64,000 nt of DNA from Blastocystis sp. Blastoise (GCA_039096225.1 JBBPEB010000015.1:558001-622000); one strand, 5' to 3'. Positions 1-27,152 are shown, counted from the stretch's first letter. Notes: generated by a model not told the origin, from the sequence alone. Program-made: numbers and translations.

Positions 1-1171
1 ACATCTATAATAATTGTAATAATAACTTAGAATAAACATAATAACTTAATAATAACTTAGAATAAACATAATAACTTAATAATAACTTAGAATAAACATA
101 ATAACTTAATAACAACTTTATATAAACATAATAACTTAATAATAATAACATTAAAAATAATAATAAAGAATGTACTTCCTCCTTTTTGGTTGCATATATC
201 AAATAAAGTAGTTTCTAGTTCTTCTACTTGAATATGTTTATCATTAGTTTTATCTATAAGGAATTCACCTACACATTTATATAAATCTCTAAAGATAACA
301 AAAAGATTATTTACTATTATAAAAAATAGTATTAACAAATATATATACATAACTATTTATATACCTATTCAGAATACGATTCATAATATATTGGGCCTTC
401 TTCATATCTGGAGTTGTAGCATTCTTATTCATAATATCCTATAAACATATATATATATATGAAATAGCCAGAGATTGAGATTTAAATAAGAGTATACGCA
501 TATTCATATCGAAATAATATGAATAACAATAAAAAAAAAAATTATAAATCTATTAAGAACAATATATATATATATATATATATACATGATAAATCCAATC
601 TGTTGCTTGAACATAAACTTCAGGGTATTTATATATATCTGACAATTTATACTCTTGATCATTCTAAATAATAGTGTATAAAAATAGCATTATTATAATA
701 ATATAATAGATGACATATATATATATAATTATATAAATACATATTTGATTGTATATCCACCTTTTTCAGCATAAATAAGAACCTCAGTCAGCATAATCTC
801 AATAGACTTACATACTTTATGCTTTATATATATTTATTTTAATTATTATGAAAATAATATATACATAAATATAAATATAAATATAAATATAAATAAAAAT
901 TAATAAAAATAAAAATATAAATAAAAATTAATAAAAATTAATAAAAATAAAAATAAAAATAAAAATAAAAATAAAAATAAAAATAAAAATAAAAATAATA
1001 TAAAAGAACATACTTGATAAACACGTTTATGTAAAGATGCTCGACTATGGAAGAATTCATATATATCAAAAGCTGCTTTCTCTGCATAACAAATCTATAT
1101 AGATTATTATTATATATTTATTATATAAACAATATGTAATGTTAATAAGGGAAATAAAGGAGTATATAATG

Positions 1172-1215
<44 letters not shown>

Positions 1216-2669
1216 GCTTTATTAGAACGGTCGCGAACTCTGGAAGCTTCTATAATACGTGAAATAACCATGGGAGAAGGTATACCAAGCTATATATATA
1301 TATATATATAAATCATAGGCCTTTGTAATGAATGACAATATTCTTATATATATATACATAATAAGAATCTCGACTATAATAATCAAATTTATCAACATCA
1401 ATACCATTACTATATATATATATAAATTAAATAGAAAGAGAATATATAGTACCTTATACGAATATTCTAATATATACTTTTTATTAGCAACAATTTGATA
1501 CATATATTCTTTCCCTTTCATTCCCGTCCATTCCCAGCCATCAGGTGCTTCTTTAGGACTACCAAGGATCATCTCATAGATACAATGAATATCCTATATA
1601 TGTATATATATATTATGGATATAAAATGCAAAAAAACAAAATATAGACAACACTCTTAATATATATATACATTGAACCATGAATAAAATCAATTGTTATG
1701 AGTATACTTAAATAATTATAATAAACAATATATATATGAATCATGAATAAAATCAATTATTATGAGTATACTTAAATAATTATAATAAACAATATATATA
1801 TGAATCATGAATAAAATCAATTATTATGAGTATACTTAAATAATTAAAACAAATATATATATATACTTCAGCATATAAATCATAATTTTCAAAAAGAGGA
1901 AGTAAATTATATTTATCGATAATTAATTGTAATAACCGTGTAGACATGATTTCATGAGACCATCCTTCACCTTTATTCATTATTCTTAAAAACTGAGTAT
2001 CATATAAATGAGATTTTATACCATGACCTATTATATTTATATATAATGTATAAAAAAATTTTTAAAGATAATTAAAAAGAGTATAAAAAGAAAAGTAATA
2101 AATATCATCAAGAATACCAAGATCATGACACAATCCAGCAATAGAAACCATAAGAATATCTTTTTCTTGAATACATAATTCAGGTTGCTTCTTTTGAAAA
2201 TTCTCCATATACAATCGAGCTAAATAATAAACTCCAATGGAATGCTGAAATCTAAAAAACATTTTTTTTTTAAATATTAAAAATATACTTATATTATTTC
2301 TAATTCAAAATAATATATATAACGAAAATATAAATACCGATTGTGTGTAGCTCCTGGAAAAACATAACTAGCACCACCAAGCTGTTGTATATCACGTAAT
2401 CTCTGGAATTCAGGAGTATCTATAATCTTCCAACACAACGGATGAACAGTGATGAAACCTAATCAGTCATATTACTAAAAATATTATTATCTTTATATTT
2501 CTCACCATGAATAGGATCTAATACGGATTTAAACTCATCAACATGATTCTATAATCATTATTCATTACATTCATAAAATATCAATTACATGTTTAGGTGT
2601 CACAAGCATATCCTCATCTTCACTATCTGATGAAAAATTCTGCGATAAATATGTAAATGCAGTGGACAT
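1..2669 (-). CDS. SAMHD1: SAMHD1-like HD-domain dNTP triphosphohydrolase (multi-exon; 3' end runs off window)
   Basis: Spliced exons give [73 protein letters not shown] and RDLYK; GT-AG introns keep frame; ATG at 2669. Confidence 0.92.
17..143. repeat. Intronic 30-bp minisatellite, about 4 copies
   Basis: Unit aataacttagaataaacataataacttaat at 21, 51, 81 and 111. Confidence 0.9.
1678..1850. repeat. Intronic 64-bp tandem repeat, about 2.7 copies
   Basis: catgaataaaatcaatt... starts at 1678, 1742 and 1806. Confidence 0.9.
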
Positions 2670-4006
2670 TGTCAAAAATACTTTTTGTAAAAAAATTCCG
2701 CGAAAGTTTTTAAAATTTGTTCGAAAAGTGGTATTTTTCTTTGATTGTATGAATTCTTTCTTAAACAATATAGTTTCATTGATTCACAAAAATATCGTTA
2801 TGTTAAATGGATAAAAAATACGGAGTAATTCGATACATGAAGAAAAAAAATAGGAATAAAGAAAATAATTTAAAAGAAATCTATTTTCAAATTCATTCAC
2901 TCTATCTTTTTAATTATATGAATAAAAAACGCTTTTATCATTTCCTATCGTTGCTTATTTCATAAGACTGTTTCGAGGCACATTATCATCAAAATTACCA
3001 TTGAACCTCATAGGAAGGAAAACATATGAATGCTCTATGATACCGAAATTTATACCACTGTTCAGACAACATAGAAATCTTGTTTCTTTCAAAAAAAAAT
3101 TTATGATTTCCAAAATGAATTCAGAAAGATAATTATCAAATAATAAAATTTTGCAACTCACCTATAGTTGTGCTTCTACATGATATAAAAAATATCAAAT
3201 CATTATAGATCAGAATAGTAATAATACGTGATTGTCTAGGAAACTTTTCTAACGCTGTTTAAACTACATGTCAATGTTTACGAGCACCTGAGAAAAGTGA
3301 AACATATTATAAAGAAGAAAGCATAAAAAGGTGCATACGAATGACACAAATCATAAAAATCCATGTAGATGATACGCTCGTATTAACATGGTTATTTTCT
3401 ACAAAGTGGCCTTACTCGCCTGTCCTTTTTTTAAAGAAACTGTTCAGATTATTGGTAGAGGTTCTGCTGACAAAACCGTCGTAATACTCTAGTCTCATCG
3501 AAATACTATTATAAACAAAATGATTGGTGTTTCATTTATCCAATAAAAAGTGGAGTTTAGATAAGTTGTTTTCCATTGATTGGATTGTTTTTTTATTTCA
3601 AATCATTCTGAACACACTTGTTTTACAAAACATGCTTTCGTTTTGAATGAGAAATGTGTATAAAGATGTTAAAAGATTTCATTCTCATAAGGATTTGTGC
3701 CTGATAGTCTAATAGTTATTTAAATAACATAACTATTGTCTGTTTGTTTCATTAATGAACTGATAAAGAAGTATTATATCTTTTAGACAAGAATGAATTC
3801 GGACACACAATAAATTTTCAGCCAATCATTTCTTAACATAAACAACTAGATTCCCATGGGGAATACAGATTAATCTCTAAAAAAAAGTGACTCTATTCTT
3901 TCCATTTTCATTAGCCAACATTCTCTTTGGAAAATGGATGGTGAGAGCATAAGAAACGGCATTCCCAACCACATTAAAACACATTTTATTTTTTGTTTCT
4001 ATTGAG

Positions 4007-9350: not shown

Positions 9351-9763
9351 GCTACTTGATTCTTTCTATATTATATTTGTTTTTATTTATTTAAATAATT
9401 ATCTCCTAGTTTTTATTTATTTTTCTTTAATTATAGAATATCAATATTGTTACAAACATTCAAAAATACTTTTTTTGTTTATTTTTGTTACCTTATTTGT
9501 TTGAAATACTTGATATTCAACAAGGATCATCTTTATATATACTTAGTAATTTGTTTTTAAATAGGTTCTTTTCGACATATGCGTTTTGTTTGTTTTTTTT
9601 TTAAATTATTAAAAAATAAAATTTTACATAAATTTTTAATAAACTAAAAAAGTCATAAAACGAAAAATATATTTTTTTTCAATTTTTTAAAACTATTTGT
9701 TCAGGTATATTCTTAATATATTCTTTTATATGTAACTCAATATTCATACATATGATTTATAGG

Positions 9764-11626
9764 ATGGAGATTGATATAACACAAGAAACTAATGATAAGA
9801 CATTTTTTTATTTCTCAAAAGATTATGGAAATGAAGAATTTAAACTTATTGAGTTGAACAAAGATTATATATCTGATTATGAGAAAGGAGAAAAGTATTT
9901 TTATAGAATTCATAATATCATTATGGATATTCTAGATTATATATAAAAGGAACAACCTCTTCAAAGGCTACATTATGCTCTTCATCAAGAAGGTATGAAT
10001 AACTAACGTTTTAAATAAGTCATTAGGAGAATTATTTATATATAGTTCTGTTCTTCAATCAGTTTCAACATCAAATACTGTATTAATATGTGAGGACAAC
10101 AGTAAAGAATCGTATTTATTCTTTAATATAATTTAATTATTTTAATTTTATTTAAAAAAACAATATATAAATAGCTCAAATGATATAGTCGTACATGGAA
10201 AAGTTGGCTATCAAATTGAAGTATATTCACTATTGAGATTCTTTTTAAAATCGATATTTTTGTTCAAGATATTTTATTTTTAAATCAAAATTTATAGTTA
10301 GTAACGAATCCCATGGACCCATCCGCTTTATATTCTTCTTTAAATTCTTATAAAGAGGGAAATGTAAATACAATTTTTATATACTATAATTTATAAATTA
10401 ATATTTATTTATATATAATTGAATTGTTATATTATAGGGAAAATCAATACAGGAATTATGGTATAATTCTATATATAGTGAGAAAGAAATTGAAGAATTT
10501 TTGAAAAGTAGTTTTCATTGCGTTTGTAATTCGAATAGTATATATAGATTATTATTAATATATTTACTTATATATAGAGGAATGGTATTCGATAAATAAT
10601 AATGATTTATATCAATATATATCAATAATAACTACATATATATTGAATAATGATTTAAATATCAATTCATTTTCAAAAGAAACTATTCTCCAAAATATTC
10701 AAGATCCTTATCCTTTTATGATTGTATATGCTTATATATATATATGTAATTACTCATAGTATTCAATATTTCTTCTTTTTATTTTTATATTCTTTTCGAG
10801 TTTATATATAATTATATATAATTATATATAATTATATATAGGAGCATGTATTATCTATATATACGAAAGAGAATGAGAATGGTACTTGGTCATTCAAACA
10901 AGGATTATTAACCACGGAAATAGCTCGTCATATCTTTTTAACTGAAGGAGAATGGATACCCACGACGGAATATATACAATTATTACAAGCAGAACTCCCT
11001 GCTGGTATATATATATAGAATTATTAGATATAAATAGTAATAAAATATATAATAATATATAATATATAATAATAATAATAATAATATATAATATATAATA
11101 ATAATACTATATATATAGAGTATACACTTGATTTATCGATTTTATCTTCTTTATGTATATTGGAATCTCAAAATGGTGTAGTTGGATATCATTATATAGA
11201 TATGTACGCTCTTCCTGTCGATCCAAAAGAACGATATAAACATTTATTTTCAATTAAATCCGAATGGTCTAATGAAGAATTACAATACTTTATTAAGTAT
11301 ATATTTTTTAGTATAATATTATTTTATATATATCTTCATATATTATAATATATATTGTTTTATTATACTTTTATTTTTCTTATTTATATACTATATATTT
11401 AAAAAGTATTATGCTATAATTTACATCATATTGTGTAGTCTAAATATATACTATATATAACAAAATGAAGAATTATTTATATGATTATTATAATCTATAT
11501 ATATATAGTGATTTAGAAAAGTGGGGATATGGTAAGTTGCATGATTTAAATATACAATTCTGTAGAGAGGTGAATAAGAAGAATAATGATGGAACTTATT
11601 TGAAAGTACTTGTTCTTAAGCGATAA
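9764..11626 (+). CDS. DCC1: Sister chromatid cohesion protein DCC1
   Basis: FKLIEL, KATLCS...QSVSTSNTVLI and C-terminal LPVDPKERYKHLFSIKSEWSNEELQYFI match the Dcc1 family; probable 5'-UTR intron at 9705-9762. Confidence 0.8.
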
Positions 11627-11836
11627 ATTCAACTATTTTTAGTCTTTGTAGTATATATAAAAAAATGTGTGTTTGCTATTTGTTTTGTTTGAATTCTATA
11701 TATTATTATAAGTCAAATAAAAAAAGTTGATAATCTATACAATTAAATATATAAGTACAACAAAACAATAGAAAATAAAATAAAAATATAATAGAAGAAT
11801 ATTATTTATTCTATTATATACATAAAATATATATTA

Positions 11837-12219
11837 TTATTGTTGAAATTTAATATTATAGCCTCCGGTCTTAGGATCTTGTTCCATTTTAAAATTATCT
11901 AAACTCATTCCAAATTTACCTAATATTTTATTTCCAAATCCTTTTAATTTTGATAACATTTCTTCTTTTAGTTTTTCATTTCGTTCATTAATTTTCTTAT
12001 CTAAAGCTTCTTTCTTTAGTCTATATTCACGAAGAGAAGGGTCAAGCTCTAATATCTTTGCATAATCTATATGGTATTTTATATATTATTATTTGATATA
12101 TATATTATTTGATATATAAACTATATTATAATAAAAGCATATTATATATACCTGCTTGTAATTCATCTAATTTGTCTAGTTTTTCATAACATGTTGCTCG
12201 TCGAATATAAGCCTGGAAT

Positions 12220-12251
<32 letters not shown>

Positions 12252-12283
12252 AATAAATAAATAAATAATATAAATAAATAATA

Positions 12284-12330
<47 letters not shown>

Positions 12331-12887
12331 AAATAAATAAATAATATTATAAATACTTTAATATAATTGGGTTGCTTTTCAATAGCTTGATCGCAATCTT
12401 TACATGCTTCTTCATATTGATTCTACAATTAATTAATTATAGAATAATAAAAATGATTAATTTCTATTATATATATAAACTAAATATATACAAGTTCAAT
12501 TTCAGCAGCTGCTCTATTTGCATAGAAAATTGACTAAAATACAAAAACTATGATCAATTCTTTATAAAATATACTATATCCTTTTTATATTCTTCCAGAT
12601 CTGGACAAGCCTCAAGGGCAGATGAATAACATGAAATTGAGTCATTATAACGACCTTCCTTGAAATGACTATGGAAAAGAAATTGTCTTGTAAACATATT
12701 ATTATATAAAATAATAATACGCATTTCCTTCATTCTTATGCTCAAGGGCTTCATTATAATCTCTTTCAGAATGAACAATAATTTCAGGAATATCTTCCTC
12801 TTTTTCTTCTTCATTTTCTTTCTTTTCTTCAGACTCCTCTACAGTCTCAGGAACATCTACAAATTCTTCTTCTTGATTGCTTTCCAT
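11837..12887 (-). CDS. TTC1: Tetratricopeptide repeat protein 1
   Basis: Acidic N-terminus, three TPRs (KNEGN..F..G.Y; FYANRAAA; AYIRRA) and the diagnostic tail EEMLSKLKGFGNKILGKFGMSLDNFKMEQDPKTGGYNIKFQQ. Confidence 0.88.
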
Positions 12888-16169: not shown

Positions 16170-16178
16170 ATAAAAAAC
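16170..16178 (+). repeat. Left target-site duplication ATAAAAAAC
   Basis: Identical 9-mer directly outside both TIRs; 9 bp is typical of Mutator. Confidence 0.93.
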
Positions 16179-16883
16179 GAGAACTTGATTAACCTCGTCC
16201 CGTTTTTGTGTTTTATTTTTGGTCGTCCCGCGGGACGAGTGAGTCATAAAATGAACTTTTTTTTTACCAATAATAATTTACTCTTGTATTTTTCTTCTAA
16301 AAGAACTTCTAAAAATTTATCAAAGTCGTCCCATATATTATTCAACTTTTATATTATCTTAAATGATAGATTTTAATGTAAACACAGTATGTATGCTATT
16401 GTGATACTTGTATAAGACGACAGGAAATAAAATATAAACTTGTTTTTTGTCATTCTTAGTATATCACTCAGAATTCTGGGTATAAACTTTGTTTTGACAC
16501 TCTTATATAATATTAAATTATAAATAAAGGTACACTGAACTATTTTGAGCTTTTAATAAAAAAACGTAAACATTTCTACATTTCTTGTCTTGAAGTTGTA
16601 AATTAAGTGAGTCTATTTGTATTCAGTCAATTTCAGACTAGTAAAGTTATCACAATAAAATACTCAAAGCAAAAACACAATTTTAACAAATGTAGTGAAT
16701 TCTTTAAAATGGAGAGTATTTTCTTACAAAATAAATATAATTTTTACTATATTGACATAAATAAAGATTTATAATTAAAATAAAATAATAAACTATAAAA
16801 ATAAAAATTAACGACAAATAAAATATGAGAAAATAAATTGTTTTATTCTTGTGCTTTATTTTGTGTTTAGTCCATATTTATTT
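16179..16883 (+). repeat. Left TIR of MULE (705 bp)
   Basis: Reverse complement of 26439-27143; no mismatches seen in the stretches compared. Confidence 0.95.
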
Positions 16884-16893
16884 TATTTTCTTT

Positions 16894-19800
16894 ATGAGTT
16901 CAGCAAAAGAAATAAAGCAAGTGGCCTTGGAGGATGTTGGACTGTGCTCCCACTACAACAGCCGTGAAGAGTTGCTGAAGAGCTATTCATTATATAGATC
17001 AATCTATCACTTTTGCGTAAGACAACGTGGTGGGCATACGCTAACATATGTGTGCTCAAACAGTGATTGCCCTTTTATTGTTAAATATACAAAAAATGAA
17101 AAAGGTTTTGAAGCACAATCGTACTGTTGTTCCCACAATCATAAAGGTATTATTATATAACTATTACTATTTGTTAACACTCTATAAAGAAAACTTAAAT
17201 CAGTCCTATTCAACAAAACTAGTATATGATGATGCAAGTATATAATACTATATATTATTATTGTTATTATGCTTGATTTATTATGTTTTAATTTTTAATT
17301 TACGTAAATGAAACTCGTTTATTTATATATACAGAAAATATTTTATTATTTTAAAATTATTATGATTATTATAAAATATTTAATTATTGATAGATGATAC
17401 TTGCTTAATAAAGAATACTTATTCAAAAACTGGCGTAACATATGGAGAATTTGAAAGGTGTTTCTATTCTTTATTTATAAAAGATCCATTTGGGTTATAC
17501 TCAAGATATAAAACAGAGGCCAAAAGTCACTTTCCAAATATAGAACCAGAAGTACTAGATCACTGGTTTCAAAAATTGTTTAATTCAATATATGGAACGA
17601 ATGAAGATGGTTATCTTATGCTTCCTGCTATGCTTTATTCTATCAAACAGTACGAAAATATTGATTATAAAATTTATGTTAACAAAAATGATAATAAATT
17701 ATTTAGATTAATTGTAGTATATCATTCTGTAATAGAAAAACTTTCAGAATTATATAATAATGAGCTATTCATAGATGCTTCACATAGTCACTCCAAAGAT
17801 AAGTATATTATATATGATATTATAGTTTTATCTTCTTATAATAAAAAATATGTTCTCGGATATATGGTAGATCTAGATGGTGAAGGAAAAAATAGTTGGA
17901 TTGATTTTTTTTCATTTTTAATAAGTCGTGGTATATATTTATAATTAATCTATATTATATGTTTAATTATTAATTTTTTCTTATTATTATATATTGTATA
18001 TATATATTTATAACATTATTTTATCTATTTATTGTTAATTAATATCTTAAATTCAATCAATAATCTTTAGAATATTTATTGCTTCTACATGTTATTATAT
18101 ATTTTATAATTAATTTGAAATTATTTTATTTTTATATATAATGCCTGATAAAAGCTATTTTTTTAAATATCATTGGATATAATCGTTCAGATTTCTTTTT
18201 CCTTAAGTATTGTATTACATTTTCATTTCTATTTGTTTACTAATAATATATATATAGAATTTATTTTATTTCATATCATTTTAATATTTGTTAGTTGAGT
18301 ATTGCTCTATTTTAATATTATTTTATTTTTTATATGGTTTTTTTATTTCATTGATTTTATAAAATTTATTTATTTCACGTTATTTACATATAATATGTTT
18401 CAATAATACATTATTTTATACATATACAATTATAAAATTTACTTATTGGAAGTGCTAAAAATTATGATTTAATCATAAAAATATATATAATTTTATCTAG
18501 TATTCATATATATATATGATCATTAATATATAGGTGTGGATGAAAATTCGAAACTTGTTATTCATTCAGATGGTTTGATGGGTTTATCGGATGCTATTGG
18601 TGAGTTATTTCACTTTTCAACAAATGTTATGTGCGTTTTTCATGCAAGGAATATCATGTATTCAAAAAAAACTATTAAAGAGTCTTCTGATATAAATAGA
18701 ATCTTTTTTCAGTATGCTTCAGCTAAAGATCTTATCTCTGCAAAAAAATATTTACAAGATGAAATTGAATACGTTAATCAACGTAATATAAATGATTCAA
18801 ATGCTAATCTCGTTAAGGATATTAACACTTTAAGTGAATATTTAGATTCATGCGATAAAAGGTTTTGCCGTTTTTTTCATAAAGGATTTACTGTTACCAT
18901 GCTTACAAATAATCCTTCTGAACAAATTCATGCTCAATGGTCAGAAATTGTTAGAAAATCTCCATTATGTTTATTTCCATTTTTCTTTCATATAACCAAT
19001 AGAAAAAATATGTTTGATAACGAGGAAGATTGTATTATAAAGAAAACTATACCTTATGTCTTTCAAAAAAAGGATCAATTATGCAAAGAAGGCGATTTCA
19101 TAATGAAAGGAGAAGGAATAAATGAAATTTATATTTCGAAAAATAATAATTCAATAATTTATACTATAAAATATATTCCAGCTGCTACCTTTTATTGTGA
19201 TTGTCAATTCTGCAAAACCGAAGTTATTTGTGAACATATGATATGGTTTATGAAAGTAAATAAAATAGAATTTGATTCTCTTCCTTACGATCTTGTTAGA
19301 AGATACTTCATTTTTTTGAATATAAAAACATGTAAAAACTGTCCATTTTACCTGTTTACCTCATTTATTTATAAACCCCAATTTAGAGACTCTATATTGA
19401 TTGATACAACCCAAAATTATGGATATAGACAATTTAGGATTATTGATTCAAATGATATTGTTTTTAACAAAGAAAGTATGCTTATATATATTCTTAAAGT
19501 TAGTTTATTCATATATAGCGTTCCAGAATGAATTGAAGAATTTATATAAACAAATATTTTGTGTATATTTAATTATTATTATTTTTATATTTAATAGGCT
19601 GAGTGTGTATCAATCAATGAAATGATTTATCCACTAGACTACTCCATGTATTTAGAATTAAAAAATTATTTTGAAAAACATAATCCGTATCGTGAAGGTA
19701 TATATTTGTTAGTCATAATAAACACTGAACTTATTTTAGACATTATTTCAGAGAAAAGTTGTGAAAAGCGTGAAGAATCAATAACATTGAAGTATACAAA

Positions 19801-21208
19801 TTTTAAAGATGGTTACTCATATACTGCACCTTCTTCCTTGGCTTTTTGTTCGTTAGATGATTATATGATAAATAATACTGTATATTATATATCTAATATT
19901 ATATAATATCGTTTAAATAAAACTTTCTATTTTATTTAGGTATCACTTAAAATAATAAATATTAAGACTGGGGATATATTTTTAAAATCAATAAAACGCT
20001 CTAATACAATTAAAGAACTCAAGGAAGAATTAAATGTAAATTATGAATTATGTGTGTTTTTATTAATGTTATATATAGATAATATTTAAATTACCAGATG
20101 ATGTAACCCTGTTCATATTTTCTTCAGGTGGTTTTCTGGTTAAAGAATCTGAATCAATCAAAAGCATAATAGGTTATGACTCCATTTCAACTCTCAACTT
20201 ATATATATGTTTAGTATGATTTATTATATATTATATATCTATTTATATATAGGTACAATTAAGATGTCAATATAATAGTGAAACACTATTTTGCCATTGT
20301 ACATGTAAATAAATATTTTATTATATATATATATATATATTTTATATAGTTCCACTATGGAATATATTTGGAAAAGAACAAAAACTTGCATGTGGATCAG
20401 TTCATTTCGACTGTATATTGAATTAATTTTTGTTTTCAAACAATAAATCTATTGAATTATCACTTTTGTATATAGATACATGTGATCTACATCAATTTCT
20501 AATGTCATACAAAAACTATAAAGTTCGTATCGACATTATTTCTTTAGAATGTATGTTATATTTTCATCAATTAGTTATTTATTCTTTCAAAATGATGTTT
20601 ATAGACACAAAACAGACTATATGTATTGAATATGACTCACGACCATGCAATTCTAGAGTATTTTATAATATGAAAAAGCTGCAAATAAGCTGTATATATA
20701 TTTATTATTATTAAATTATATTTATTTTGTATAGTGGGGGAACTGGATCGAACAGCTACAAAATATTTACAACAACTTTTAGAATCCTCCTTTTTTGTTT
20801 GTGATAATATTGTTATAACAGGTATTTATTTTATTATTATATATTATTTATATAGGTGAAAAAATTCCTGAATGGGTACGTACATCTCTTCAATACGTAT
20901 CAGGCATAAAAAATATTAATATAAATTGGGACTTATCATGTATTATTTTATTTTTAATATATAATATCTCCATATTTATAGTACACACAATATTTGACTA
21001 TGAAATATTACCTAATATAAATGAAAATTCTGTGGATGGTATATATATATATATATTTTCATTATGTGCTTTGTAAAATATATTCTAATTACTATAGTAA
21101 ATCTTCAGACTCCAATGTCTATACAGAACAGCTCTCCAATATCATTAATAAGTGTTCAGTCAATAAATTCTATTATGGAGAATAAATGCATTTATGACCC
21201 AATTAAAG
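16894..21208 (+). CDS. MULE transposase (WRKY/GCM1-type Zn DBD, DDE core, SWIM, ubiquitin-like domain); probable 5' part of a fused gene ending at 26440
   Basis: YVCSNSDCPF...SHNH (C2H2 DBD); LFIDASH (D1); VIHSDG..CVFH (D2 plus CxxH); TNNPSEQIH (E); YCDCQFCKTEVICEH (SWIM); all GT-AG introns keep frame up to a phase-1 donor at 21209. Confidence 0.92.
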
Positions 21209-21246
21209 GTATGTGTTATGATTGTATTGATTAAAAAACGATTTAG

Positions 21247-21304
<58 letters not shown>

Positions 21305-21306
<2 letters not shown>

Positions 21307-24300
21307 AGCGTTTCACGACTGGCTACGCCAGCCTACGCTTGAATCTAAATAAACATAAAAAAATAATTTGTAAAAAGACTATCTTTTCATTATATAAAAA
21401 TTATTTATTTCAAATTTTGTTTTGTTTTATTAATATTATCAATAATCGTTTCATATTTTATTAATATTATCAATAATTGTTTCATAAAAAGAAAATTAAA
21501 AAATAAAAATTAACTATATATAAAATAAAGATTACATTCTATTTCATTAGTAAATATATTTAAATACTTAAAAAACTATAGTATTGTTTATAAAATAGAG
21601 TTTACACAACAAATAAGTTATTATAAAAAAACTCTAAAAAACTATAACATTTTGAAATACATATACTCACTTTTATTAAAACGAATTTTGTGCTAATATA
21701 CATATATATTTGATTTATTATTTTTATTTATAAAGAATAACTTGAATTTCATTTATTTAAAGTCACAATTACAAAAAATGAGTTCTTTTGAAAGACAAAA
21801 AACATTCTTTAAACAATAATAGTTTTGTATTTAGTGACAAAAAAACGTATTATACGGTTTTAGAAGCAATTAAAATCATTTTACCCATTTTAACATTCCT
21901 ATCAAGCAGTCAACCATGTTTAATTAAACTAATTTTTAATATTTTATGTTCTATAATAAGTCTATTTATTATTTTAATAAAAGGTAACTTGAATCTCTTG
22001 ACTTAACTATTGTAATTCTAAAAGAATAATTTTTTAAACAACTTAAAATATTTATTTATTGTAGATTTTAATATAAAACAATTTAAAAACACTCTATACA
22101 TACTTATTACAACCATATTTAAAAAATAGACTCATTTTAACATTTTGGTCAAACACACAACCACCTTTATTTCAAACAATTCTTTTATTATTATAAACAT
22201 TAAACACTCTAATACTCATTTTTACAGAAAGTGTATTGAATCTCTTCACTTAAGACAGTCAAACAGACAATTCAAAATTATTTTACCCTTTAAACTCATT
22301 ATAAAGTGATAATATTTATAGAATTGCTTTGATATGTGATTTAGGACACATTGAACTACTTTTTACAAAATTATGAGTCAACATGTGCATATACTCATAT
22401 ACTCGTCAACTCCACTTTTGACTATTTTTTTGAGAAATGCAATACATATGTAGTCTAGTTTTCAAATATGTAAAAATTAATTGTCAAATATGAATTTGAT
22501 TTGTCAACTTTCAGAAAATTTTTAGAAAAAAGATTTTTCAATTTTCAGTTTTTTAACATGTTATACTATTGACTCTACTAAACTCATTTCTTAATTAATT
22601 TTAAATATTAAAATTTATATTATTAATATGTTTTATTCTCTATATTTATTTGTTATAATTATATAAAATAATTAAATATTGACTGAGAAATTAATGTTAT
22701 AAAGTATACCCTTTTTTCAAAAAAAATAATTTTTATGTTTTGCATATATAATTTTTTATCTCAAAAGTTATTTTATATTTTGATAATATTTTTCTAAATA
22801 TATAAACTATATGTTATCTAGTTTATAAATAAGTTTTATTTATTTTTTAAAAATTAATATTGATGGAGAAATTGTCAAAACAAACTATAGTATCAAAAAT
22901 GTTTTCTTTTTTTTAAACGACTTATTTCACTAATTAAAGATTTTTAAAAACTAATTTTCTTATTTAAAGCTTATTTATGACATTTCCAAATCATAAAGAC
23001 TGACAACTGACTTTTTAAAACAAACATTGTCAGTATCAGTTCAACATGTTGTCTTAACTTTTGTAAATAAGTCACATACAGTGTCTATGAGTGATTCTAA
23101 ACACTAATCTAAACGTTTTAAGAGTTTATTGAGTTAACATTGTCTGGTGATCTGTTGTCAAAGTCTTTTAAAAACAAAATAAAATAATAAAATATGTTTA
23201 TTTTGGTATTTAGTGATTCAATATAGAGTCAAATATCAAATATATTTATAAATGATGAAATTATTGACAACAAACAAATGAAAAAATTTTAACAAAAATT
23301 TCGAACGTCATTTTTTTATTGAGTTTAACTATTGTCTCCTGTGACTTCATTTTTTAATATTTTAAAAAAATGGCAAAAACGGATGACATTTAGGTCGTCC
23401 TACATCTAAATAAGCTTTAACCTTTTTATTTTATAAAATATTGACTGAGAACTGATGATAACAAAATATACCATTTTTAGAAAAATTTCATTTTTATGTT
23501 TTTCATATAAATTAACATATCTCGGTCAATATTAAATATTAAACAAAAATATAAAAAACGGATGACATCTAGGTTGTCTTGTTTACAAATATGTTTTTAT
23601 TTTTATTATATGTTGAATATTGACTGAGATCTGATGATAACAAAATTGGGTATCAAAGATGAAAAATTTTTATAAACAAATATTTTCTTATTAAAAGATA
23701 TAATTAAAATATAAAACATATTTATGACGGATATAGAGTTAACTAAATACATTAAAGCTCAAATAAGTTTATTAAGAAGGAATGTGTTGGATATCAGTTT
23801 GTCTTTTGTCGTTATTTAAAAGATTTATTGTTGTTTCAGAGTAGTTAAGGTCATTGTCATGACAACTGAAACCACTTTAGAGTTTATAGTTAGTAATGTG
23901 TGTATTGATATGTTGTCAAGTTGTAAATATAAACAAATCTACCCGTCAAAACTATTTATAAGACCAACCCGTCAATAAAAGTTAATTTTATAAAAATAAA
24001 TATAGAGTATGTTAATAGATATAGGAAAAATAAGAAAACAATAAAAAATGAAAAACGAAAAATAAGTGTTTTTATAAAAATGAAAAATATTGGATAAAAA
24101 AAAAATAATCCAATAATTTTGGTTAAAATTTTGTGCGAAAATGGTTTTTTGCGTTTTTTAGCCAGAAATTTAGAATTTTCGAAAAATTTTTTTAACAGTC
24201 ATTTTCAGAATTGTGTTCCGGATTTTATGATGTAATTTTTATTTTATAAAAGTTAATAACAAAGTCAATAATAGTGAAAGTGTGTGAGACACCGTACGCT

Positions 24301-24319
24301 ACATGAACTAAATTAAGGA
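21305..24319 (-). mobile_element. Candidate non-autonomous Helitron-like element nested in a MULE intron
   Basis: Minus strand A|TCCTTAAT...GGCTGGCGTAGCCAGTC GTGAAACGCTTG|T: 5' TC, GC-rich hairpin 12 nt before the end, A/T target, no TSD; removal leaves a 111-nt intron. Terminus is CTTG rather than CTRR and the 5' boundary is uncertain. Confidence 0.55.
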
Positions 24320-24334
24320 TATTAATATATATAG

Positions 24335-26149
24335 ATATTAATGACAAAGAGAAACTTGACATAACTACAATCCATGAGAATACAAAGTGTATACTAGATG
24401 AAAAACAGAAAACATGTCTTCTTAGTCCTTCTGACCTTTTACCATTTTCAGATGATGATATTTCAACTATATCCAGTAAAGAATGTATATTTACATGTAA
24501 TATCATTAATCAAGAAGAAACTGATGAAGAGACAGAAAAATATGAAGATAAGCTTTATGAAAAAGCTAAAGTACATAATTATATTTATATTATAAATTAT
24601 ATATTATATTTATCTGCTTATCAAATTGGTATTTTTATATTTCCTGTAGTTTCTAGTTATTTCCTATCGTTTTATATATTATATTTGTGTATAAAAACTA
24701 TTTATTACTATATATATTATATTTTTATACTATAGAAAATTCTTAAAGAGGATTCGATTTCAGTACGAAGATCAAGTGATTTATATCTAAATGATTTTAT
24801 TATTGATACATATATTAATTATTTATGGCTGGCATTTAAATTATCAAGTCAATCTAAAGATTCTATTAATACCATTTATATAATTGATTATTTTAAAAGA
24901 ATTATAATCGATAGGCAACTGGCTAATAATCAGTCAAATGTATGTTTATAGTTTATATATTATTATTATTTATAGTACTCTAGCCTTATTAATAAAATCA
25001 TTTTGAGTAATACAAATCTAATAATAATACCATACTGTCAGTATACATTATGTTTACAAATTAATTCATTTTTTTAGTTATAACCATTGGATTCTCTATA
25101 CAGTGAGTACTGTAGCTATTAATAATATTGCTAATGGTATATATTTATTATTAAAAAATGTTTAATTGCTATTTCTTTGTTTATTTCGTTTTTAATATTT
25201 TTATCTTTGCTATATTTAGAGTTGAAAAAAAATAAACTAAGAAATTCAATAGATGTATGTAATTATATATAAAAAATTATTATTTATAAAGCTGGAAATC
25301 AGGTGCTATAACTCAATGGAACGAATTACTATTAATTATAACTGTGCAATAATTAAGTATTATTTATTTCTTATTATATTACTAATCTATTTATAGTTTT
25401 GTAAATGCTTTATTTCGAGAAATTATCAAAATGAGATGCCATTATACAGATGATGAATGTAAAGACCTTTTAAAGATATTAAATACGCAAATAAATGTTT
25501 ATGTATTATTTTTATTTTATATTACTATTTATTTAGGAATCTCCTCAACAACACAACTCATATGACTGTGGTTGCTATTTACTAATGAATACGAAATATA
25601 TTATTGAAAATTACTCAATTTGGATAAATAATCCTTCTATTAGTTATACCTTTAGCAGTAGTGTAATAAGAAGTGTTATACTAGAAAAGATGGCATTAAT
25701 GTCACGTATTCCTGGATATAACAGTGTAAAACGATGTATGTAATATTATTTATATATATTAATAAATATATAGTTTTTACTGATATTGAATCCTCAATAA
25801 ATTATATTAAAGAAAACACTCATTATGATACTATAGTAAGTGACAGGGAATATAATACTAGACAAAAATCGTTTATAGAATTTATACAATTAAATAAGTA
25901 TTTTTTAATATATGTAATTCTTTATACTCTATCTTTATTTAGCAAGATCTTCCATGATAATTTAGGCTTAACATTTAAGAATCTAAAAAACAAGCAGCAG
26001 CTTCCTATTCTTAAAAAAAAAATAAAAAAACAAAAATTGTATTATATTAATAAAGCACTTTTAATTCTGGATCCAAATCGTAAACGAACAAAACATGCGA
26101 AGAGATTTGTTGCTCGTAAAGTATCCAGAAAAAAGAATCTAACCAATTC

Positions 26150-26216
<67 letters not shown>

Positions 26217-26295
26217 TATTAAATTGTTTACTATATGATATATTATGTTTATATATATATAGTTATATTCAATTATTTTTTGCATAATTATATTC

Positions 26296-26346
<51 letters not shown>

Positions 26347-26440
26347 TATATATATATACTTTCATAATATTATTTGAATAATTATACACATTATATATAG
26401 TCGTAAAGCTTATAAGGATAAACTAAATACCACAGAATAA
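24335..26440 (+). CDS. Ulp1/C48-family SUMO/UBL-protease domain inside the MULE; probable 3' part of the fused transposase gene
   Basis: LYLNDFIIDTYINYL, IIIPYCHYNHWILY, IRCYNSM and PQQHNSYDCGCYLL; first exon has a phase-1 acceptor and no usable ATG of its own; basic C-terminus; TAA at 26438-26440. Confidence 0.88.
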
Positions 26441-27143
26441 ATAAATATGGACTAAACACAAAATAAAGCACAAGAATAAAACAATTTATTTTCTCATATT
26501 TTATTTGTCGTTAATTTTTATTTTTATAGTTTATTATTTTATTTTAATTATAAATCTTTATTTATGTCAATATAGTAAAAATTATATTTATTTTGTAAGA
26601 AAATACTCTCCATTTTAAAGAATTCACTACATTTGTTAAAATTGTGTTTTTGCTTTGAGTATTTTATTGTGATAACTTTACTAGTCTGAAATTGACTGAA
26701 TACAAATAGACTCACTTAATTTACAACTTCAAGACAAGAAATGTAGAAATGTTTACGTTTTTTTATTAAAAGCTCAAAATAGTTCAGTGTACCTTTATTT
26801 ATAATTTAATATTATATAAGAGTGTCAAAACAAAGTTTATACCCAGAATTCTGAGTGATATACTAAGAATGACAAAAAACAAGTTTATATTTTATTTCCT
26901 GTCGTCTTATACAAGTATCACAATAGCATACATACTGTGTTTACATTAAAATCTATCATTTAAGATAATATAAAAGTTGAATAATATATGGGACGACTTT
27001 GATAAATTTTTAGAAGTTCTTTTAGAAGAAAAATACAAGAGTAAATTATTATTGGTAAAAAAAAAGTTCATTTTATGACTCACTCGTCCCGCGGGACGAC
27101 CAAAAATAAAACACAAAAACGGGACGAGGTTAATCAAGTTCTC
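26439..27143 (-). repeat. Right TIR of MULE (705 bp)
   Basis: Reverse complement of 16179-16883. Confidence 0.95.
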
Positions 27144-27152
27144 ATAAAAAAC
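27144..27152 (+). repeat. Right target-site duplication ATAAAAAAC
   Basis: Identical to 16170-16178. Confidence 0.93.

Follow-up and report, generated by a model that had tools for sequence, protein, structure and literature searches.

Does one gene occupy the whole interior of this transposon, encoding a transposase, a ubiquitin-like (UBL) domain and a Ulp1-type protease as a single protein, or do two neighboring genes lie between its ends? The question is raised by a Mutator-like element (MULE) of about 11 kb found at positions 16179-27143 of the window (the whole stretch of 64,000 nucleotides analyzed) in Blastocystis sp. "Blastoise", a protist of the tortoise gut. We consider it highly probable that this is a young autonomous Blastocystis MULE whose interior consists of one 26-exon gene including a UBL and a C48 protease, and whose long intron is secondary. 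The evidence comes from the gene model, from the other copies and families present in the same genome and from the proteins deposited for them.

The element and its relatives

The element carries the traits of the Mutator superfamily, namely an IS256-type DDE transposase, long terminal inverted repeats (TIRs) and a target-site duplication (TSD) of 9 bp, the expected length being 8-11 bp and typically 9. The left TIR (16179-16883, plus strand) and the right TIR (26439-27143, minus strand) are 705 bp long, 100% complementary to each other and bordered by identical 9-nt duplications at 16170-16178 and 27144-27152. TIR matches in the genome correspond to three genomic copies at 99-100% identity, and the window copy and its sisters C33 and C26 are each flanked by their own, different 9-bp TSD. 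The C33 copy is 98.5% identical in DNA to the window copy and has a stop at codon 999; the C26 copy is split by a 28-kb insertion. The window copy and C33 differ by 17 synonymous and 20 non-synonymous changes, giving a pN/pS of 0.28 to which the transposase part contributes most of the signal.

The window family (family 1) has diverged paralogues. Family 2 is collinear with it from the DNA-binding domain (DBD) to the C-terminus at 37% amino acid identity, and the two share 14 intron positions and phases under strict comparison and about 17 of the 18 of family 2 under loose comparison, among them a phase-1 intron at the junction discussed below. The deposited proteins of family 2 start at the same ATG and run through the UBL and the C48 domain. 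Family 3 is also collinear, though broken by insertions. The long TIRs of family 2 carry a Cse1/exportin-like fragment that is spliced onto the mRNA.

Gene model and the junction intron

The initial annotation had described an unbroken spliced frame from an ATG to the protease and a product of about 1,400 aa filling the element. The model bears this out: 26 GT-AG exons, all on the plus strand, join under predicted splicing into 4,248 nt without an internal stop and form one gene of 1,415 codons, whose product would contain in order a DBD, a DDE core, a SWIM finger, the UBL, a conserved middle region and the C48 protease. At a GC content of about 22%, some 9% of random codons are stops, and a frame of 1,415 codons therefore cannot be due to chance. 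Hand-splicing leaves a certain freedom, which is removed by the conservation of the frame in paralogues. The hand-spliced exon chain needed one correction, since homology revealed an additional micro-exon of 16 codons, 1b (17190-17237), that has phase-1 GT-AG borders and also occurs in the proteins deposited for both families. Domain searches were made with single exons or with the deposited proteins P0001-P0006, the joined models being aligned to this genome's copies and the deposited proteins only.

The start codon at 16894 lies 11 bp inward of the left TIR, which presumably contains the promoter. It opens exon 1 (16894-17146), which is 48% identical to family 2 and encodes an N-terminal zinc-finger DBD of the WRKY/FAR1-like pattern C-x4-C-x21-H-x-H; Pfam returned no match for this exon and the fold is assigned from the Cys/His pattern alone. 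Exon 2 (17394-17930) encodes the first part of the DDE/RNase H-like core (Pfam ZSWIM1-3_RNaseH-like, E 7e-4). Exon 3 (18534-19498, 43% identical to family 2) contributes the remaining DDE core, a SWIM-type CxC...CxH pattern (19196-19237) and a conserved tail. The SWIM pattern, like that of exon 1, is visible in the sequence and has no Pfam match. A SWIM zinc finger following the DDE core and an N-terminal WRKY/FAR1-type zinc finger are common in MULEs, without being universal. The transposase assignment is reinforced by the protein deposited for the C33 sister copy (P0001), which scores 35.8 bits against PF00872 (cut-off 21), and the MULE profile PF10551 gives a borderline score on family 2 (27.5 bits for a cut-off of 27.6). 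Among 1.84 billion proteins, a search with the exon 3 protein retrieved only two protein clusters, both from this genome. The 3' end of exon 3 is uncertain, with candidate donors at 19499, at 19520 and, in the deposited model, at a site further upstream. A donor at 19256, directly after the SWIM pattern, was ruled out by the conservation with family 2 of the 113 codons downstream.

Exons 4 and 5 (19598-19697 and 19740-19879) encode a linker and have intron positions and phases in common with family 2. They are followed by the two UBL exons and by exons 8-15 (20253-21208), a middle region without assigned function in which exons 11-13 share 41% identity with family 2. This region ends at the donor 21209. 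The intron opened by this donor extends over 3,126 nt (21209-24334) and, as initially annotated, it is in phase 1 at its donor as well as at its acceptor AG, which ends at 24334. The first exon beyond it (24335-24570) encodes an acidic linker devoid of Met.

Such a gap of 3.1 kb looks intergenic in the window copy, and it invites a reading in which a transposase gene ends near 21230-21350 and is followed by an independently transcribed protease gene; retention of the intron would indeed lead to a stop at 21232-21234. The gap, however, is a nested dispersed repeat of 3,014 bp (21305-24318) that interrupts the (TA)n tract of the intron, is present in at least 40 genomic copies, two of which are about 100% identical, and is absent from both sister copies. 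The intron measures 152 nt in C33, about 71 nt in C26 and 87 nt in family 2, a short ancestral spacing. The ancestral element thus lacked the repeat, and the intron, originally a short (TA)n one, owes its 3.1 kb to a secondary insertion. The phase-1 donor and acceptor are moreover conserved between families. Downstream of the junction, the first Met is residue 1172, beyond the catalytic His at residue 1135, and the protease half is consequently left without a usable start, in agreement with the initial observation that its exons have no workable ATG.

Deposited models also splice across the gap: in the annotation of "Blastoise", the protein of the window copy joins exactly 21208 to 24335, and the underlying pipeline retains only introns backed by RNA-seq (PMC12129017). 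The same genome paper cautions that assemblers may merge neighboring transcripts (PMC12129017), which favors separate genes. Against them stands a family-2 copy, C4, in which eight predicted introns are replaced by exact exon-exon joins, four just upstream of the junction, within the middle region, and four downstream. These eight exact losses provide DNA-level proof of the predicted splicing on either side of the junction. We regard the two-gene reading as extremely improbable and already largely refuted, and a single gene filling the element and encoding a transposase, a ubiquitin-like fold and a C48 protease as supported.

The mRNA of this single gene is not uniform in the deposited data. 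The deposited model of the window copy lacks a number of conserved exons, among them the second one of the UBL and the one carrying the catalytic His, and begins at an internal out-of-frame ATG. The full-length mRNA of the window family is therefore a prediction, and the family is likely transcribed as several isoforms. The true 3' end of the gene is likewise uncertain. The C-terminal tail (25774-25897 and 25943-26213) contains a basic motif kept in families 1-3 and runs into a (TA)n that the model frame reads through to a TAA at 26211-26213; to place the stop at the inner border of the right TIR, as in the initial annotation, an additional intron, 26150^26401, would be required.

The ubiquitin-like domain and the protease

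The UBL is encoded by two exons (19940-20035 and 20079-20213) and covers 77 aa, residues 682-758; it is conserved in four families. Pfam did not recognize it (best E 0.05) and phmmer found no match among PDB sequences. Profile alignment with hhalign matched it to the host's own ubiquitins in full register (P 0.012), and the Atlas features matching it that bear a name are all ubiquitin-like. The fold proposed in the initial annotation was recovered by structure prediction, a template-free AF2 model of the family-2 homologue matching ubiquitin over its full length: TM scores against ubiquitin, NEDD8 and ISG15 are 0.67-0.74 over 77-80 columns, the match to ubiquitin has an E of 5e-5 and there are 104 hits at E <= 0.001. 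This model deserves moderate confidence, with a pLDDT of 66.8 and an alignment of seven rows including some misplaced fragment ends; the lone family-2 exon modeled without an alignment reached a pLDDT of 33.6. On this modeling, a beta-grasp ubiquitin-like fold for the inserted domain is supported with moderate confidence. None of the four families has Gly-Gly at the UBL terminus or close to it, and the domain would therefore be an integral UBL rather than a conjugatable modifier. A complex prediction between the UBL and the C48 domain, run without controls, scored 0.00 and speaks neither for nor against binding.

The C48/Ulp1-type protease core is spread over seven exons (24736-25735). Its catalytic Cys codon lies at 25567-25569, where it had first been placed, with the His at 25085-25087, the oxyanion Gln at 25549-25551 and an Asn at the catalytic-Asp position (25310-25312). 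PF02902 matches the window exon 25537-25734 with 25.5 bits (cut-off 20.7) and the family-2 protein P0006 with 49.2 bits over profile positions 57-206. The HW, Q-x5-C and DCG motifs occur at the spacing expected of Ulp1/SENP enzymes (clan CE, family C48), from which this family differs by about 18 extra residues between the His and the Asp position. Beyond its sister, no protein was matched by a homologue search with P0006, and phmmer found no relative of it among PDB sequences at E <= 0.1. A model using a short version of the exon after the His was dropped on comparison with deposited family-2 proteins.

In all three family-1 copies the Asp position is occupied by Asn, and in families 2 and 3 by Asp, the position being defined by motif spacing and known SENP motifs rather than by structural alignment. 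Family 1 thus has the His, Gln and Cys and lacks the full His-Asp-Cys triad, and its protease, although C48-related by sequence, may be impaired. This substitution is compatible with another origin of the C-terminal module, as a captured host fragment in the manner of Pack-MULEs, useless to the element and in frame by chance or through recent origin. MULEs do take up host genes, as the exportin-like piece in the TIRs of family 2 illustrates. The UBL, middle region and C48 domain nevertheless keep the frame and have introns in common in families with no more than 37% identity, the C48 core is conserved between families 1 and 2 (41% identity) like the DDE core (43%), and the pN/pS given above argues in the same direction, though mainly for the transposase part. 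Capture without use is, in our view, very unlikely.

Within a single gene, the protease could cut its own product in cis and free the transposase, possibly together with the UBL, from the protease. Such a polyprotein would suit the fusion in cis of protease and transposase seen in three families or more and the poor conservation of the linkers flanking the UBL/middle module (17-28% identity), and a precedent has been proposed for OTU-fused MULE transposases (PMC1702500). Self-processing at the UBL, suggested in the initial annotation, lacks its usual requirement, as the UBL is followed in none of the four families by Gly-Gly or a comparable Ulp1 cleavage site; the Asn of family 1 also weighs against it. 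We hold cleavage in cis to be unlikely.

Known systems and possible function

Fusions of Ulp1 domains with Mutator and Ginger1 transposases have been described from hydra, lancelet and plants (PMC2836005). The combination of domains reported here, at first not recognized from described elements, is thus known as far as transposase and Ulp1 are concerned, the embedded UBL being the component that seems undescribed. The Ulp1-bearing Mutator elements (plant KAONASHI/KI-MULEs, melon CUMULE, hydra and lancelet MuDR-type elements) share with the Blastocystis element a PF02902 domain, long TIRs and a 9-bp TSD, and in the hydra and lancelet elements the Ulp1 domain is also part of the transposase polypeptide (PMC2836005). 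According to their descriptions, they are set apart by the UBL and conserved middle region located here between SWIM and C48, by the stramenopile gut protist host and by the 25 introns of the gene; our literature search found no report of a UBL in an Ulp1-bearing Mutator element. Ginger1 similarly combines in one ORF a DDE transposase and a C-terminal protease of ubiquitin-like modifiers, Ulp1 or OTU, and a role of the ubiquitin/SUMO pathway in its transposition has likewise been proposed (PMC2836005). It differs by its transposase superfamily (Gypsy-integrase-like) and its TSD, and no UBL is reported for it. The transposase-protease fusion is already known and the built-in UBL looks like the new part.

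Integral, non-conjugatable UBLs regulate or localize a ubiquitin-family protease of the same chain in deubiquitinases of the USP4/USP7/USP14 type. These host enzymes belong to clan USP and not CE/C48 and contain no transposase, so that the comparison is an analogy only. By this analogy, the UBL would be a docking or regulatory domain and not a substrate. The N-terminal half would perform cut-and-paste transposition, generating the 9-bp duplications, and the UBL and protease would accompany the transposase as an accessory module that may, at the site of transposition, target ubiquitin-like marks carried by chromatin or repair proteins of the host or by the transposase itself. That such a module might oppose silencing based on SUMO or ubiquitin, as the initial annotation proposed, is speculation. 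In a more specific and quite improbable version, the non-cleavable UBL mimic and the C48 eraser would dock on the host chromatin and repair machinery that reads SUMO or ubiquitin and strip the modifier locally, allowing the element to escape silencing or to steer excision repair; if true, they would form the first transposon-encoded pair of a reader-mimic and an eraser for ubiquitin-like marks.

On repeated occasions, ubiquitin-family proteases entered DNA transposons that are unrelated to each other (Mutator, Ginger1, Helitron), and we know of no demonstration of the role they play there. For annotation, the 'hypothetical proteins' deposited for the window family are incomplete isoforms or mis-starts. 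The exact intron losses of the C4 copy document cDNA-mediated intron removal within a DNA transposon. The element places a UBL between transposase and protease, an arrangement that several diverged families have kept, and such elements have been active recently in a small genome. It constitutes a compact system in which a possible manipulation of SUMO/ubiquitin signaling by transposons can be tested, and the naturally occurring proteases with Asn (family 1) and with Asp (family 2) lend themselves to comparison.

Mobility and gene structure of the element

The Mutator-like element resides in a window of about 22% GC and is bounded by perfectly matching terminal inverted repeats (TIRs) of 705 nt each (16179-16883 and 26439-27143), with a 9-bp direct duplication on both sides. 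The genome searched (33.3 Mb in 34 contigs, the window belonging to contig C4) contains three copies of this family, hereafter family 1: the window copy, a 7,896-bp element on contig C33 (L001, G000:C33:751600-760600) and a copy on contig C26 with 36 kb between its ends. Since each of the three carries its own, separate 9-bp duplication, family 1 is a Mutator-type element that has moved recently.

The gene model of the window copy was built from the coordinates of the initial annotation and refined by homology, the 3' ends of exon 3 and of the gene being provisional. It comprises 26 exons with GT-AG at every border; once joined, these amount to 4,248 nt without internal stop and encode 1,415 aa. 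The introns measure 34-83 nt, with five exceptions: four of 99, 156, 165 and 603 nt, and the junction intron of 3,126 nt (21209-24334), which separates the transposase and protease halves. These lengths agree with the short but variable introns of tortoise isolates (PMC12129017). The initial annotation had placed a phase-1 donor at 21209, a phase-1 acceptor before 24335 and the catalytic Cys codon at 25567-25569, and had found no workable ATG in the protease exons. Both borders are indeed in phase 1, the Cys codon was recovered at the same position and the first Met past the junction is residue 1172, beyond the catalytic His 1135. At the 3' end, the frame may stop at 26211-26213 by reading through a (TA)n tract or, as initially proposed, at 26437-26439 with a further intron. 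The last exon enters this long tract (26140-26400), which holds no stop in any frame and differs in length among copies; unless splicing removes the tract, changes in microsatellite length would alter the C-terminus.

The 3-kb gap at the junction is secondary. A dispersed repeat of 3,014 bp (21305-24318) is inserted with sharp boundaries in a (TA)n tract, and copies lacking it exist: in both sisters the (TA)n after 21304 continues directly at 24319, and the junction intron measures 152 nt in C33 and about 71 nt in C26. The repeat has more than 40 copies genome-wide, two of which are about 100% identical to that of the window. On the minus strand it displays a short, Helitron-like GC hairpin near its 3' end.

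The frame of the window copy is open, although the nested repeat occupies its junction intron. This copy differs from that of C33, which is devoid of the repeat, at 37 exonic positions; 17 of the substitutions are synonymous and 20 are non-synonymous, with a pN/pS of 0.28 arising mainly from the DDE exon. In C33, codon 999, in the first exon past the junction (window 24440), has undergone a nonsense change that the deposited model bypasses. The C26 copy is 99.8% identical to that of the window; its second exon for the ubiquitin-like domain (UBL) is interrupted, at the site matching 20080-20086, by a 28-kb TIR-bounded insertion (G000:C26:980485-1008669, L002-L005). This insertion ends in inverted repeats that match perfectly over 30 bp or more, about 7 bp of target sequence are duplicated around it, and it holds a 94% identical copy of the 3-kb repeat; it may be a large DNA transposon or a Maverick-like element.

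Paralogous families and splicing

A genome search with the DDE exon retrieved three further families at 47%, 42% and 37% identity, two of which have a C48 match downstream on the same strand. Family 2, located near the ends of contigs C2 (L006 and L007, G000:C2:181000-196000) and C4 (L008 and L009, G000:C4:62000-77000), was modelled as a 1,420-aa protein encoded by 19 exons. Over their full length the two families align at 37% identity, with 43-49% in the DNA-binding domain (DBD) and DDE, 41% in both the C48 core and a portion of the middle region, 26% in the UBL and 17-28% in the linkers. Column and phase agree exactly at fourteen intron positions; when a few columns of tolerance are allowed, about 17 of the 18 family-2 introns coincide with those of family 1. 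The shared set includes the phase-1 junction intron, only 87 nt long in family 2, and the first exon past the junction contains no Met in either family. Family 3, on C5, is collinear from the DBD to the C-terminal basic motif and is spread over about 21 kb by nested insertions. The more distant family 4 (minus strand, G000:C4:1729000-1744000, L013 and L014), at 37% identity in the DDE exon, encodes the DBD, DDE, SWIM, UBL and middle region, and the 7.5 kb that follow hold no detectable C48. It represents either a truncated copy or a relative devoid of the protease.

The inverted repeats that flank family 2 measure 3-4 kb or more and extend past the DNA examined (1-3119 and 9517-12635 in the C2 locus; minimum arm length 4,088 bp in the C4 locus). 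They contain a Cse1/exportin-2-like fragment (PF08506, E 1e-18) that looks like captured host sequence and that splicing appends to the transposase-protease mRNA in the deposited family-2 proteins.

The C2 and C4 copies of family 2 share 99.9% identity, yet the genomic DNA of the latter lacks the sequences of eight predicted introns, with exact exon-exon joins in their place. The losses affect introns 8-11, which directly precede the junction, and introns 14-17 of the protease part. Such a pattern is left by cDNA-mediated intron loss, here within a DNA transposon, and the exact joins prove splicing at those borders in both halves of the gene, a 29-nt micro-exon included.

The deposited proteins of these elements are unnamed hypothetical proteins from an annotation pipeline that keeps only RNA-seq-supported introns with at least three junction reads (PMC12129017). 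P0003 (KAK8803343.1), from the window copy, has the exact 21208-to-24335 join. The family-2 proteins P0002 and P0006 (1,497 and 1,499 aa) use the same ATG as our family-2 model and span the DBD, DDE, SWIM, complete UBL, junction and C48 domain. The family-1 models lack two middle exons, the second exon of the UBL and the catalytic-His block, and they end in a retained intron. Their start is an internal, out-of-frame ATG, which results from the retention of a 43-nt intron. In view of these defects, real isoform heterogeneity is possible in family 1, whose full-length mRNA is predicted. The single frame, the collinear families, the intron losses and the deposited junction bear out the initial proposal of a single gene, and a real fused gene is well supported.

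Protein modules and their possible role

The element carries one gene with one frame and three recognisable modules, and its mobility leaves 9-bp duplications. The transposase scores above the PF00872 cut-off in P0001 (C33 copy) and is borderline for PF10551 in family 2; the putative zinc-finger DBD and SWIM are recognised by their Cys/His pattern only. The Cys exon of the window copy exceeds the PF02902 cut-off, and most of this profile is covered on P0006. The protease motifs HW, Q-x5-C and DCG are present, the position of the catalytic-triad Asp being occupied by Asn in all family-1 copies and by Asp in families 2 and 3.

Several lines of evidence point to a ubiquitin fold for the embedded module of 77-80 aa, found with a conserved start motif in all four families. 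Pfam returns a weak match only (E 0.05). Comparison by hhalign with the host's own ubiquitin-family genes aligns in full register (P 0.012), and the only Atlas neighbours bearing names are ubiquitin and Rad60-SLD clusters (0.87-0.88). A template-free AF2 model, computed from a 7-row alignment of these transposon sequences alone (pLDDT 66.8), can be matched along its entire length to ubiquitin, NEDD8 and ISG15 (TM 0.67-0.74, E down to 5e-5) and yields 104 structure matches at E <= 0.001.

The initial annotation had not recognised this combination from described elements. This does not hold for the transposase-Ulp1 association, since Ulp1 domains have been described in Mutator elements or transposases of hydra, lancelet, Arabidopsis, maize, rice and melon, as well as in Ginger1 transposases (PMC2836005). 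OTU proteases fused to MULE transposases have also been described (PMC1702500), and MULEs are known from stramenopiles but were unreported from Blastocystis (PMC6446971). It appears to hold for the UBL: in a full-text literature search, no transposase was encountered that harbours a ubiquitin-like domain. The present proteins resemble the Mutator and Ginger1 Ulp1 transposases in carrying such a protease domain and would differ from them by the embedded UBL. Large protein-database searches with exon 3 and P0006 as queries returned no relatives outside the Blastoise genome.

The N-terminal half would bind the TIRs and carry out cut-and-paste, and the UBL-middle-C48 half would be a conserved accessory. 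The main alternative, in which the protease processes its own polyprotein, appears unlikely: no Gly-Gly follows the UBL in any of the four families, which speaks against it and makes the module an integral UBL rather than a cleavable modifier. In the reading that we prefer, and to which we give about an even chance, this accessory half would be a deconjugating enzyme for a ubiquitin-like modifier, active where transposition takes place, and the UBL would serve it as a docking or regulatory domain.
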